From Octopus bimaculoides (Eukaryota): a stretch of 44,432 nucleotides of DNA. The notes beneath the pieces are model-generated. The model searched no databases, was not told the DNA's origin, and saw only the letters and a program-made list of their open reading frames with translations. Within the stretch, counting starts at the first letter, position 1, and each line of letters starts with the position of its first letter. A program made the position numbers and the translations under genes. The DNA lies in assembly GCF_001194135.2 (NCBI RefSeq), contig NC_068989.1, forward strand, positions 17,563,127-17,607,558, in the 5' to 3' direction. Shown piece by piece: positions 4,333-41,911 of this stretch.

Positions 4333-4415
4333 CTGAAAGGGCTGTGTAACCAGGTACGTGATCGGATTACGTGTGAAACCGATAAATGTCTTATTCAAAT
4401 CAATGACATTATCAC
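4333..4415 (-). CDS. Gene A exon 3: C2/MNNL middle; the gene continues beyond the left edge of the window
   Basis: 83 nt, phase 1->0, (G)[27 protein letters not shown]. Intron-3 sequence at about 150-245 matches about 33498-33595, so exon 4 should lie just left of position 1. Confidence 0.85.
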
Positions 4416-5019
4416 CTAAAATTAATTTGAAAAAAATTAAACAGAAATTATATTGTGATACGAGAGTGAAAATTTACAGACATACACACACAAGTACACA
4501 GATGATACAAACATTCAATTCTCCCTAACCTCCAGTATAAAGATGTTATATACACATAACGTAGATATATTATCAGGCCAGATTGTCTGCACTGGCTCCA
4601 TGTATACTGTCTGCACAAACTCCAGACTACACTGGGGTAGAATAGAACAAACCACCTAAATTCATGTTAGAGTACCCGTATAAATGGAGTATAGTCTGGC
4701 TAGCTTGTTCTGGCATTGAGTCGTATAATATGAAATAGTGAAATTAAAGCAAGTAATGATACTTTCAAAGCATTTAATACGCACGTTTCAGGTTGTGGCG
4801 CAATAAATAAAACGGAAAATCGTCTCTTACGTAAGATGTTCCTCAGTTAAGACATTTCAAAATATGAACTTATGGTCGATGTAATATATACATACATTCA
4901 TATATACATACATGGAGAGGGAGAGAGAGAGAGAGAGAGAGAGAGAGGGAGAGAGAGAGAGAGAGAGAGAGAGAGAGAGATAGAGAGAGAAAGAACGAAG
5001 GAGAAACATATATATACAC

Positions 5020-41400: not shown

Positions 41401-41911
41401 TCCACTACAAAGACACACATGCGTCTAAATATGTATTATATGTATGAATATAAATATATGCATATATACACATATATGTAAATATATACACACATATATA
41501 CATATATATGCATACTCGTATGTGTGTGTGTATGTATGTATGTAGATATTACATATGTACGTATGTGTATGTATGTATATATATATATATTCATGCATAC
41601 ACATGCATGCAAGCTCATACAAACATACTTATACGCATAAAGATGTATGTAGACACACATGCGTCTAAATATGTATTATACAGTATCTGTGCGTGTGTGT
41701 GTGTGTGTGTGTGTGTGTGTGTGTGTGTGTGCGTGCGTGCGTGCGTGCGTACGTGCGTGTGTGTGTGTGTGCGTGTGTGTGTGTGTGTGTGTGTGTGTTT
41801 GCGCACGTGCGCGAGGGTGTTCGGTTTGCAAGGAATCCAAGACAGAATACTTACAGAAATTATTGTAGCAAGAAAAGCGCAGAGCAGGAATCTACCGGTT
41901 AATTGAAGCAT
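23286..41911 (-). CDS. Gene B (joined model, 10 exons, about 839 aa): secreted Delta/Serrate-like protein, SP - C2/MNNL - DSL - 15xEGF - chitin-binding type 2 domain, no TM
   Basis: Exons 41911-41855, 39878-39689, 35534-35452, 33367-33200, 32074-31930, 30624-30514, 29607-29488, 27568-26117, 25310-25293, 23461-23286. All have AG/GT boundaries and the phases chain 0,1,0,0,1,1,1,1,1 into one open frame of 2520 nt. The N gap at 27681-28252 could hide extra phase-1 EGF exons. Confidence 0.88.
25293..25310 (-). CDS. Gene B candidate 18-nt micro-exon 9 (linker VPDQQG)
   Basis: Minus strand reads TTTTTTTTGCAG|TACCAGACCAGCAAGGAA|GTAAGT with a CTAAT branch-like motif upstream. Phase 1->1 and frame-preserving. 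Confidence 0.65.
26117..27568 (-). CDS. Gene B exon 8: 1452-nt exon encoding 13 EGF repeats
   Basis: Lies inside ORF 26076..27587. CTTTCAG acceptor at 27569-27571, G|GTAAGC donor at 26116, phase 1->1. 13 six-cysteine modules of the CxNGGxC...CxCxxGFxGxxC type. Confidence 0.95.
26575..27245 (-). repeat. Coding tandem repeat: three copies of a 225-nt unit (two EGFs, 75 aa) inside exon 8
   Basis: CAAGTTCCTCCATTTTGACA recurs at 26641, 26866 and 27091, exactly 225 nt apart. Confidence 0.93.
29488..29607 (-). CDS. Gene B exon 7: EGF repeat 2, calcium-binding type
   Basis: 120 nt, phase 1->1, TCTTAG / G|GTAAGA. (G)[39 protein letters not shown] has the IDEC...CxDxxNxYxC cbEGF signature. Confidence 0.93.
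30514..30624 (-). CDS. Gene B exon 6: EGF repeat 1
   Basis: 111 nt, phase 1->1, TTTTTCAG / G|GTATTT. (A)[36 protein letters not shown]. Confidence 0.93.
31930..32074 (-). CDS. Gene B exon 5: DSL domain
   Basis: TTTCAG acceptor and G|GTACGT donor, 145 nt. [48 protein letters not shown] has the exact DSL cysteine spacing C-x8-C-x3-C-x11-C-x7-C-x8-C plus the YYG and CDxNGxKxC motifs. Confidence 0.92.
33200..33367 (-). CDS. Gene B exon 4: C-terminal part of C2/MNNL domain
   Basis: TTTTCAG acceptor and GTAAGT donor, 168 nt, phase 0->0. [56 protein letters not shown]; the end THLTYQIR parallels Jagged AHFEYQIR just before the DSL domain. Confidence 0.87.
35452..35534 (-). CDS. Gene B exon 3: middle of C2/MNNL domain
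   Basis: TTTTAG acceptor and CAG|GTAAGT donor, 83 nt, phase 1->0. (G)[27 protein letters not shown] contains the NPI motif of Delta C2 domains and bridges the phases of exons 2 and 4. Confidence 0.85.
37072..38255 (-). mobile_element. Penelope-like element remnant, copy B: GIY-YIG tail plus longer 3' region ending at (TA)n
   Basis: ORF 37809..38018 matches copy A ([38 protein letters not shown]); upstream VTTDQRTxIGLCEG. Contains a hammerhead-like motif about 600 nt downstream of the ORF. Confidence 0.72.
37164..37216 (-). ncRNA. Degenerate minimal type-I hammerhead ribozyme motif in the Penelope-like 3' region
   Basis: Minus strand: cagcgc CTGGTGA ACGTA-tttgtcttg-TACGT GAAAC TATTA GTA acgcgtg. 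Core is one mismatch from CTGANGA, stem II is perfect, stem III is near-palindromic, cleavage triplet GTA. Confidence 0.55.
39689..39878 (-). CDS. Gene B exon 2: N-terminal half of Notch-ligand C2/MNNL domain
   Basis: TTTACAG acceptor and GTAAGT donor, 190 nt. [63 protein letters not shown](G) follows the Delta pattern xKLxxFxNxxGxLxNGxC...CxTxxxVC...CxYGxxxTxVIG. Confidence 0.9.
41101..41405 (-). mobile_element. tRNA-derived SINE (tRNA-Arg-like head), gene B intron 1
   Basis: Minus strand GGCGCAATGGCCCAGTGGTTAGGGCAGCGGACTCGCGGTCATAGGATCGCGGTTTCGATTCCC has A box, TCG anticodon-like loop and B box, followed by a non-tRNA body. Confidence 0.8.
41855..41911 (-). CDS. Gene B exon 1: start codon and signal peptide ([19 protein letters not shown])
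   Basis: ATG at 41911, 19 codons, donor GTAAGT, phase 0. Joined to exon 2 it gives [29 protein letters not shown], a typical signal peptide. Conserved in paralogue A. Confidence 0.85.

Follow-up and report, generated by a model that had tools for sequence, protein, structure and literature searches.

A tandem array of Delta-like genes in octopus whose products probably serve as chitin-anchored matrix proteins and not as canonical Notch ligands

Two Delta-like genes of Octopus bimaculoides, here called A and B, are in our estimate (at a probability of about 0.8) adjacent members of an old and intact head-to-tail array encoding secreted proteins that begin like Delta and end in a ChtBD2 domain. 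The array would have originated by unequal crossing-over and would still be homogenised in part by gene conversion, and the copies would change in size through unequal exchange inside the EGF exon. Through its ChtBD2 end the protein would be tethered to a chitinous extracellular matrix, with its rod of EGF modules displaying a Delta-derived C2-DSL head to some partner; canonically engaged Notch is probably not that partner.

The window analysed, a stretch of 44,432 nt (CM046609.1, 17,563,127-17,607,558), holds the 5' third of gene A and the whole of gene B. Self-BLAST revealed a colinear duplication far above chance level (81-98% identity), in which copy A (4047-13685, minus strand) comprises exons 1-3 with their introns, plus roughly 1 kb of 5' flanking sequence, and copy B (35167-42931, minus strand) is the portion matching it within the window. 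A sequence-only reading of the window had reported that exons 1-3, of 57, 190 and 83 nt, recur 29-33 kb apart on one strand with shared splice sites, no stops or frameshifts and alignable introns. Each of these points was borne out: the A-to-B offsets are 29,286, 32,751 and 31,119 nt for exons 1, 2 and 3, all on the minus strand; acceptors (..AG) and donors (GTAAGT) are the same in A and B; 110 codons are open in both, with 25 of 330 nt differing; and the introns align at 78-96% identity outside insertions. The insertions themselves differ between the copies, and intron 1 measures 5441 nt in A against 1976 nt in B. A block of about 400 bp upstream of the ATGs (13276-13685 and 42528-42931; 94% identical) is found at a constant offset in all copies from both O. 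bimaculoides and O. vulgaris. It was rejected as a demonstrated regulatory element, as its cross-species identity of 86-87% is about the neutral dS expectation, and it is counted within the duplication unit. A Pfam scan for transposon domains in intron open reading frames gave sub-threshold matches only (Exo_endo_phos_2 at 23 bits, and zf-met).

Gene B could be modelled from start to stop on the minus strand. Exon 1 (41855-41911), with the ATG and signal peptide, matches NCBI isoform X1 (P0124), as do exons 2 (39689-39878) and 3 (35452-35534), both MNNL/C2 and both confirmed by extraction, exon 2 also by Pfam. The MNNL/C2 module ends in exon 4 (33200-33367; 168 nt, phase 0/0), which is followed by exon 5 (31930-32074; 145 nt), encoding the DSL domain, exon 6 (30514-30624; EGF-a), exon 7 (29488-29607; EGF-b, of the calcium-binding type), exon 8 (26117-27568; EGF array, Pfam EGF E = 1.5e-69), an 18-nt micro-exon (25293-25310; VPDQQG, phase 1/1) and a terminal exon (23286-23461) carrying ChtBD2/CBM_14 and the stop codon. 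Within exon 8, 225-nt tandem repeats (26555-27122, minus strand; repeat families D18 and D20), each unit comprising two EGF modules, account in the alignment for the 150 codons that gene B has beyond gene A; NCBI starts this exon at a tandem acceptor 9 nt further upstream, at 27577. The resulting model has 833 or 842 residues, with AG/GT boundaries. A further acceptor, 41 nt beyond exon 6, opens an alternative terminal mini-exon (30453-30472, minus strand; GIRDTV*).

The window contains ten N-runs, all intronic or intergenic and about half of them adjoining TA/CA microsatellites, and no reading frame spans any of the ten. The one closest to an exon (27681-28252) lies 112 nt away, beside the exon 8 acceptor of gene B, and the gap at 33793-33802 has a duplicated 25-mer on its flanks. 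Exon order and orientation across the gaps are backed by the colinearity of A and B, and NCBI isoform X1 joins exactly the modelled gene B exons across them. No extra exon was found in the ungapped gene A equivalent of the gene B intron 7 gap (L001 26041-27672).

For gene A, the window holds exon 1 (12569-12625; ATG and signal peptide, shared without change by NCBI protein P0002 at its N-terminus) and the MNNL/C2 exons 2 (6938-7127; exact extraction and comparison with P0002) and 3 (4333-4415; exact extraction), all on the minus strand. The remainder lies to the left, in flanking locus L001, and a leftward extension had been set beforehand as a test of the sequence-only reading, which had left undecided whether gene A also ends in ChtBD2. 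It does: beyond the DSL exon (L001 24298-24442), EGF-a (25139-25249), EGF-b (25927-26040) and the EGF array (27673-28674), the extension reached a CBM_14 exon (32860-33035) 79% identical to its gene B counterpart. All of these downstream exons have open frames and canonical splice sites, and their cysteine set is complete. The micro-exon has lost its GT donor. Exon 4 is the only exon not visible; it is predicted to lie inside a gap of 1134 Ns directly left of the window, its intactness there being assumed from the paralogues and O. vulgaris. The gene A model has 681 residues, 56 of them unknown, with AG/GT boundaries.

The sequence-only reading had also expected further copies nearby, and these exist. 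Genes C and D lie upstream of gene B and a fragment, E, downstream, giving an O. bimaculoides array D-C-B-A, head to tail on the minus strand, plus fragment E; A, B, C and D are consecutive on a single strand across loci L001, L002 and L003. In O. vulgaris, whose loci L005 and L004 are free of gaps, a D-like gene is likewise followed by Ov1-Ov4 on a single strand, each array copy having an exon 4 and a CBM_14 end. Over DSL, EGF-a and EGF-b, identity is 88% between B and Ov2 and 85% between A and Ov3, but 67% between A and B. Orthologues are thus closer than paralogues, so the A/B duplication predates the split between O. bimaculoides and O. vulgaris, and a recent species-specific duplication is ruled out. 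An exhaustive HMMER scan covering 1.84 billion representatives yielded, above the generic Delta-like background, sequences from Octopus and a single one from Argonauta, and no others. The family appears to be restricted to octopods, its absence from decapodiform cephalopods being judged on protein databases. The lineage-specific expansion that had been proposed therefore holds at the octopod level (Octopus and Argonauta only) but not at the level of the species.

The genes share a common plan of about ten exons encoding a signal peptide, MNNL/C2, DSL, a run of about 10-15 EGF modules and, at the C-terminus, ChtBD2 (CBM_14). The Pfam MNNL match (E = 1.5e-8; 34.8 bits, cutoff 22.5) is accompanied by alignment to the C2 regions of DLL1, DLL4 and Jagged-1, and residues 26-250 match the human DLL1 structure 4xbm end to end (E = 4.6e-39), with DLL4 and Jagged-1 aligning too. 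The DSL match (E = 1.4e-10) and the CBM_14 match (E = 3.9e-13; 49.8 bits, cutoff 22.1; model positions 1-53 of 53) each come with six cysteines in A, B and C. Between them lie about 11 six-cysteine EGF modules in A, 15 in B and 10 in C, and the EGF exon measures 1002, 1452 and 900 nt, respectively; the gene C model (648 residues) also has AG/GT boundaries. The reading frames end in CBM_14 and a stop codon, and no transmembrane segment was found (maximum 19-residue Kyte-Doolittle mean past residue 30, 0.53-0.72). A homology query with the C-terminal EGF and ChtBD2 region returned no candidate, and it also missed the query's own database entry.

The Notch-binding face of the DSL domain is formed in Jagged-1 by F199, R201, R203, D205 and F207 (PMC3415683). 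In a gapless alignment with DLL1 the equivalent residues are R/D/P/T/Q in B, R/Y/P/S/Q in A and R/Y/P/T/Q in C, and all five contacts are replaced. Gene D has CEIPIIEQVRFMC at the site where canonical octopus Delta has CRPRDDKFGHYKC, and the canonical octopus Deltas retain CRPRDD.FGH (PMC8166818 supplement). The remodelled face is conserved within the family, as C-x-IPI-x-EQ-x-RF-x-C. Because there is no membrane anchor and all five Notch-face residues are replaced, the proteins do not look like canonical Notch ligands; the A/B family probably consists of chitin-anchored matrix proteins, with secretion, chitin binding and a lack of Notch binding all predicted from sequence.

The relationships among copies change along the gene. 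The DSL exons of B and C are 99.3% identical at the nucleotide level, against 83% to A, whereas in the CBM_14 exon A and C are 94.3% identical and B and C 86%; the incongruence between the two domains is significant (Fisher p = 3.6e-7). Between A and B, dS ranges by exon from 0.03 (EGF array) up to 0.72 (DSL). Such mosaic identities suggest that the copies exchange sequence by gene conversion. This bears on exon 2, where the sequence-only reading had counted 10 synonymous and 7 non-synonymous codon differences and taken them as an excess of silent change. Our recount agreed exactly (Nei-Gojobori dS 0.28, dN 0.057, omega 0.20), but since conversion makes A-B dS mosaic, the exon 2 count alone is no clean clock or test of selection.

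Across the genes, omega was 0.52 for A-B (Fisher p = 4e-4), 0.54 for B-Ov2 (p = 9e-4) and 0.64 for A-Ov3 (p = 0.036; 395 codons, the majority from downstream exons); the 'arrC' segment of the A-Ov4 comparison was left out because it was misaligned inside the repeat array. By region, omega was 0.1-0.5 in DSL and EGF-a and about 1 (0.9-2.1) in the EGF-array exon, which appears neutral. A-B dN is 0.073 against a non-coding K of 0.158, 77 of 78 cysteine columns are invariant compared with 75% of other columns, and the visible exons of A, B and C are all intact. The claim that both copies are functional and constrained was thus supported, with the qualification that the constraint, similar in paralogues and orthologues (omega about 0.5-0.6), is real but moderate and not uniform. 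Such values are high for a signalling ligand, which counts against our preferred explanation.

The NCBI annotation of the locus is wrong in correctable ways, gene A being truncated and split and gene C merged into B, and the product names 'fibropellin', 'delta-like 1', 'jagged-1b-like' and 'notch homolog' are misleading. At the gene A locus NCBI has a 184-residue protein, P0002, that ends just after DSL, and a separate 369-residue model. These two models could be taken to mean that gene A is decaying or truncated, yielding only a short secreted MNNL-DSL product, with the EGF and ChtBD2 exons no longer part of a functional gene. P0002 stops 26 residues past DSL, within an alternative last exon that has AATAAA behind it; P0001, the O. 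vulgaris model, stops likewise, and the unseen exon 4 and the lost micro-exon donor point the same way. We consider this unlikely. The downstream exons of A are open and complete, and the A-Ov3 omega, which comes mainly from them, indicates constraint there. The missing exon 4 coincides with the N-run, and it is because this exon falls in an assembly gap that the annotation is truncated and split. Finally, the alternative exon that P0002 and P0001 use is the homologue of the gene B mini-exon, whose acceptor is kept in all seven copies examined, including gene B, which is annotated at full length, so its use looks like isoform choice rather than decay.

The merging of C into B raised the further idea that, instead of belonging to separate genes, the modules of exons 1-3 serve long transcription units as alternative 5' cassettes. 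NCBI gene B spans 50.5 kb, and its isoforms X2 and X3 (P0003 and P0123) fuse a C-type exon 2, and in P0123 a C-type exon 3 in addition, to the remaining gene B exons. This is very unlikely, given that behind every 5' module there is a complete set of DSL, EGF and ChtBD2 exons belonging to it, with a stop codon at the end, and that each copy in the gap-free O. vulgaris array has a complete exon set too; in some models from other species MNNL or CBM_14 occurs twice, as is typical of read-through mis-merging, and read-through chimeras may occur as a minor by-product. That A and B are uncollapsed haplotypes or a mis-scaffolded duplicate, as the many N-runs and the duplicated 25-mer of this gap-rich short-read assembly might suggest, is effectively refuted, as the sequence-only reading had anticipated, by the non-coding divergence and exon dS, by the differences in insertions, intron lengths and EGF number, and by the tandem layout of the gap-free O. 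vulgaris assembly with its one-to-one orthologues of A and B.

Tandem duplication is in itself ordinary; the interesting part is the combination of domains together with the replaced Notch-binding face. Notch ligands are among the most conserved animal signalling proteins, and octopuses are animals noted for chitin in their sucker linings, beaks and radulae. In this array a Delta-type head (C2-DSL-EGF) has lost its tie to the membrane, gained a chitin-binding domain by fusion and increased in copy number in tandem. Although it evolves fast, the array has stayed intact at least from the time of the last ancestor that O. bimaculoides and O. vulgaris share. It offers a clear example of a signalling module taken over for a role that is probably in the extracellular matrix, and records concerted evolution within a cephalopod cluster of genes. 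A more speculative view, to which we give little credence, is that the proteins are matrix-tethered modulators of the Notch pathway, with ChtBD2 fixing the Delta-derived head on chitin, for which the cuticle of suckers, gut, beak or radula and the egg envelopes would be candidate sites. Held in this way, a ligand without an anchor of its own could withstand the pulling force that Notch activation requires, or it might serve instead as a spatially fixed decoy, and fast-evolving tandem copies could supply variants specific to a tissue or a partner. Such a mode of DSL ligand presentation would be new, and it requires that the remodelled DSL face bind octopus Notch or another EGF receptor.

Compared with the canonical DSL ligands of Notch (Delta, DLL1, DLL4, Jagged and Serrate), the array proteins have the same N-terminal order of MNNL/C2, DSL and EGF repeats, but they differ in having no transmembrane segment or cytoplasmic tail, in their C-terminal ChtBD2/CBM_14 and replaced Notch face, and in being encoded by a multi-copy tandem array with omega of about 0.5. 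Other DSL proteins without a membrane anchor are Caenorhabditis elegans DSL-1 and its relatives, which are secreted members of the family, and the engineered soluble forms of Delta and Serrate. These retain a Notch-interacting function and are not known to have a chitin-binding domain. Delta and Serrate in secreted form act as Notch antagonists in Drosophila, according to the work cited as reference 46 in PMC8166818.

The mollusc-specific 'Delta2' is also a Delta-derived gene without a transmembrane domain, interpreted as neofunctionalised (PMC8166818), and this absence is common to Delta2 and the array genes. However, Delta2 has a premature stop near the transmembrane region, whereas the array genes end in ChtBD2, and chitin is not mentioned anywhere in PMC8166818. 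The O. bimaculoides Delta-type genes in its ligand file (XP_014769856 and XP_014771450) are different genes, each with its DSL motif still of the canonical type (CRPRDD.FGH and CRVRDD.LGH), which rules out that the array is the published Delta2; gene D (XP_014781344) is the only array member included there, as one entry in a catalogue of DSL domains.

Sea-urchin fibropellins resemble the array proteins in being secreted matrix proteins that carry EGF repeats and have distinct domains at their ends, which in fibropellin are a C1s/CUB-like domain at the N-terminus and an avidin-like one at the C-terminus (PMC10336842). Pfam found neither a CUB nor an avidin domain in the array proteins, and as their ends are MNNL-DSL and CBM_14, the name 'fibropellin' that NCBI gives to B, C and D reflects EGF similarity only. 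Octovafibrin, the O. bimaculoides egg-tether protein (XP_014771937), has C-type lectin domains at both ends (PMC10336842) and is encoded by a separate gene outside the array, without MNNL, DSL or ChtBD2. Kinship with either is ruled out by the terminal domains, and for octovafibrin also by its being a different gene, but octovafibrin, a secreted octopus protein shaped as a long rod of EGF domains in tandem and assembled or anchored by the domains at its ends, offers a functional analogue for a structural role.

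Self-BLAST of the window (36% GC, AT-rich) revealed a colinear duplicated segment with 81-98% identity, comprising copy A at 4047-13685 and copy B at 35167-42931; all of the genes discussed lie on the minus strand. Exons 1, 2 and 3, defined by exon-pair alignment with flanks followed by extraction, fall at 12625-12569, 7127-6938 and 4415-4333 in gene A and at 41911-41855, 39878-39689 and 35534-35452 in gene B. They are 57, 190 and 83 nt long in both genes, with the same acceptors and the same GTAAGT donors, and their 110-codon frames are open in each. The extraction thus bore out to the base the sequence-only reading that these exons recur with equal lengths and splice sites and no stops, and its count for exon 2, 10 codons with only synonymous and 7 with non-synonymous differences, was reproduced exactly (Nei-Gojobori dS 0.28, dN 0.057, omega 0.20).

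The similarity extends to a block of approximately 400 bp lying 0.6-1.1 kb upstream of the ATG (13276-13685 in A, 42528-42931 in B; 94% identity, 98% across 300 nt), which is found at the same offset 5' of the further copy C and of the O. vulgaris copies (76-87%) and may represent promoter or 5'UTR sequence inside the duplication unit. Within the otherwise colinear intron 2 alignment, 5601-5756 matches 38093-38250 in inverted (minus-strand) orientation (∼160 nt, 82.5%), indicating a palindromic or inverted-repeat element in the duplicated intron. Intron 1 of A exceeds that of B by 3.5 kb (∼7700-11100) and contains ORFs on the plus strand that weakly match an endonuclease-reverse-transcriptase (LINE-type); similar unclassified ORFs occur in intron 3 of A (∼1000-3000). 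A dispersed repeat of 149 bp is shared, at 98% identity, between 10823-10971 and the right end of the window (44284-44432), and the DNA between the genes contains an extended trinucleotide array, (TAG)n/(CAG)n, at 14388-14599.

The remainder of gene B was resolved into exons with canonical splice sites: exon 4 (33200-33367), the DSL exon (31930-32074), two single-EGF exons (30514-30624 and 29488-29607), a 1.45-kb EGF-array exon (exon 8, 26117-27568), an 18-nt micro-exon of phase 1/1 encoding VPDQQG (25293-25310) and a terminal exon with the ChtBD2/CBM_14 domain and stop codon (23286-23461). The resulting 833-aa model differs from the 842-aa NCBI isoform X1 (P0124) only in the micro-exon and in a tandem acceptor 9 nt upstream of exon 8. 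In A the homologue of the micro-exon no longer carries a GT donor, and C yielded no counterpart. MNNL, DSL, EGF and CBM_14 all scored over threshold in Pfam, and the N-terminal 250 residues aligned end to end with C2-DSL-EGF1 of human DLL1 (4xbm; E = 4.6e-39), and also with DLL4 and Jagged-1. The protein has a signal-like hydrophobic segment at its N-terminus and no transmembrane-type segment beyond it.

Whether gene A also ends in ChtBD2 had been left as a question. tBLASTN with B peptides against the DNA left of the window (L001) recovered the DSL exon, EGF-a, EGF-b, a 1.0-kb EGF-array exon and a terminal ChtBD2 exon with its stop, all open, in phase and with AG/GT boundaries, so the answer is yes. 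NCBI annotates A as two models, one of 184 aa (P0002), which matches the window exactly, and a separate one of 369 aa. P0002 omits exon 4 and EGF-a and terminates in a short alternative terminal exon, 41 nt 3' of the EGF-a exon on the minus strand (30453-30472 in B; L001 25291-25370 in A, where AATAAA comes next). The acceptor of this alternative exon, TTTGTAG|GAAT, is conserved in 7/7 copies examined from two species, the exon encodes GIR[DN]T...stop, and it is used by two independent annotations, P0002 and the O. vulgaris model P0001; its use would give a short secreted MNNL-DSL-only isoform.

All ten N-runs of the window are intronic or intergenic, the nearest being 112 nt from an exon, and about half adjoin TA or CA microsatellites. 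No reading frame was inferred across any of them; order and orientation are backed by the A/B colinearity and by isoform X1, which splices exactly these exons, and the gap in intron 7 of B has an ungapped counterpart in A that holds no extra exon. At the intronic 10-N gap 33793-33802 the same 25-mer, ACCTCATTATATGCGGTATTCATGC, stands on both sides; the contig ends probably overlap there, in which case the gap and the short repeat would both be errors of assembly. Only one gap is of consequence, the 1134-N run directly left of the window (L001 22626-23759). In B, exon 4 is separated by 78 nt from a (CA)n tract on its 5' side and by 1125 nt from the DSL exon on its 3' side; A has its corresponding (CA)n at window 4-79 and its DSL exon at L001 24298, and as both distances point into the N-run, exon 4 of A was placed there, which explains why P0002 lacks the 56 exon-4 residues.

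The possibility of more copies nearby was borne out in both flanks. The NCBI span of gene B is 50.5 kb because isoforms X2 and X3 begin in a third set of exons 1-3, approximately 29 kb upstream of the window. These exons belong to copy C, a complete separate minus-strand gene with its own DSL, EGF and ChtBD2 stop exons (positions 10001-26583 of the upstream DNA, L002; window-equivalent 57258-73840); its exon 4 was not seen in L002 and is presumably hidden by one of two gaps. The use of C exons 1-3 as alternative 5' exons of B reflects either an erroneous merger or a chimera formed by read-through. Further upstream lies gene D (P0126), ∼52% identical and with the exon plan in common. Downstream of A, past a 100-N join, fragment E (L001 34041-35370, ∼11.4-12.7 kb left of the window) contains the final third of a DSL exon together with sequence from intron 5 (95% identity with C) and runs straight on into intron-7-like sequence with EGF-a and EGF-b absent; it is either a degenerate copy or a scaffolding artefact. 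The array order is therefore D-C-B-A-(E), head to tail.

In the gap-free O. vulgaris assembly (L005, L004) a D-like gene is followed by four copies on a single strand, Ov1-Ov4, each with exon 4 and a CBM_14 end, and protein accessions CAI9727904 to CAI9727914 suggest additional members. Over DSL, EGF-a and EGF-b, identity was 88% for B-Ov2 and 85% for A-Ov3 but just 67% for A-B, so the A/B duplication is older than the divergence of the two species. When the N-terminal module was run in HMMER exhaustively against 1.84 billion representatives, five matches were obtained at E <= 1e-30, all from Octopus, then a partial Argonauta hians protein (1e-24), then generic Delta-like proteins, cnidarian ones included, at 27-36% identity; CBM_14 was present in 0/8 of the next-best matches scanned. 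Within the limits of protein databases the family thus looks restricted to octopods, and the proposed lineage-specific expansion holds at that level, but not as a species-specific event.

Constraint on both copies, also proposed earlier, was upheld in moderate form. For A-B (625 codons) dN was 0.073, dS 0.140 and omega 0.52 (p = 4e-4); non-coding divergence over 7.8 kb (K = 0.158) was near dS and about twice dN. The orthologue comparisons, which are unaffected by within-species conversion, gave omega 0.54 for B-Ov2 (517 codons, p = 9e-4) and 0.64 for A-Ov3 (395 codons, p = 0.036). Constraint was strongest in DSL and EGF-a (omega 0.1-0.5), and none was indicated by omega in the EGF array (0.9-2.1). 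Among A, B and C, 77/78 cysteine columns were invariant, the sole exception being a gain in C, against 75% of other columns. Together these values indicate that A and B are both maintained, at a moderate level that is usual for secreted proteins evolving fast and not for core signalling ligands.

Per-exon identities among A, B and C were incongruent (heterogeneity Fisher p = 3.6e-7). Nucleotide identity in the DSL exon is 99.3% for B-C and ∼83% for comparisons with A; in the ChtBD2 exon it is 94.3% for A-C and 86% for B-C. The closest pair in exon 3 is A-B, and EGF-a stands at 75-78% in every pair; A-B dS ranges from 0.03 (EGF array) to 0.72 (DSL). C has an EGF-array exon of 900 nt, A one of 1002 nt and B one of 1452 nt. 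In exon 8 of B a 225-nt unit, which encodes two EGF modules, is present three times in tandem (26555-27122; 88-90% identity), whereas A has one and the array of C is shorter still, so that EGF count varies among neighbouring paralogues (B ∼15, A ∼11, C ∼10). Unequal crossing-over probably produced the array and altered EGF number, and gene conversion probably accounts for the mosaic similarity.

The observation is real and its interpretation is supported; tandem duplication in itself is ordinary for an octopus genome. Automatic NCBI product names ('delta-like protein 1', 'fibropellin-1-like'; in other species 'jagged-1b-like', 'notch homolog 1-like') are misleading. A survey of the Notch pathway in Lophotrochozoa (PMC8166818) lists the DSL domain of gene D in its supplement and does not mention chitin, and a full-text literature search turned up no account of proteins that join DSL to ChtBD2, of this gene array or of concerted evolution within it.

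Each protein combines a Delta head that lacks a membrane anchor with a disulfide-rich EGF rod and a predicted chitin-binding tail. The conserved Notch-binding DSL face (F199, R201, R203, D205 and F207 of Jagged-1; PMC3415683) is replaced at 5/5 positions (R/D/P/T/Q in B, R/Y/P/S/Q in A, R/Y/P/T/Q in C), and conservation of the replacement loop inside the family suggests specificity for another partner. Such proteins are unlikely to act as matrix-tethered modulators of Notch; judged from sequence, they are most likely chitin-anchored extracellular-matrix or adhesion proteins. Canonical octopus Deltas, unlike A, B and C, retain CRPRDD.FGH (supplement of PMC8166818), and the TM-less 'Delta2' of that survey is a different gene from the array members. 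Their functional analogue is octovafibrin (PMC10336842), an octopus protein of no relation to them whose EGF rod ends in lectin domains.
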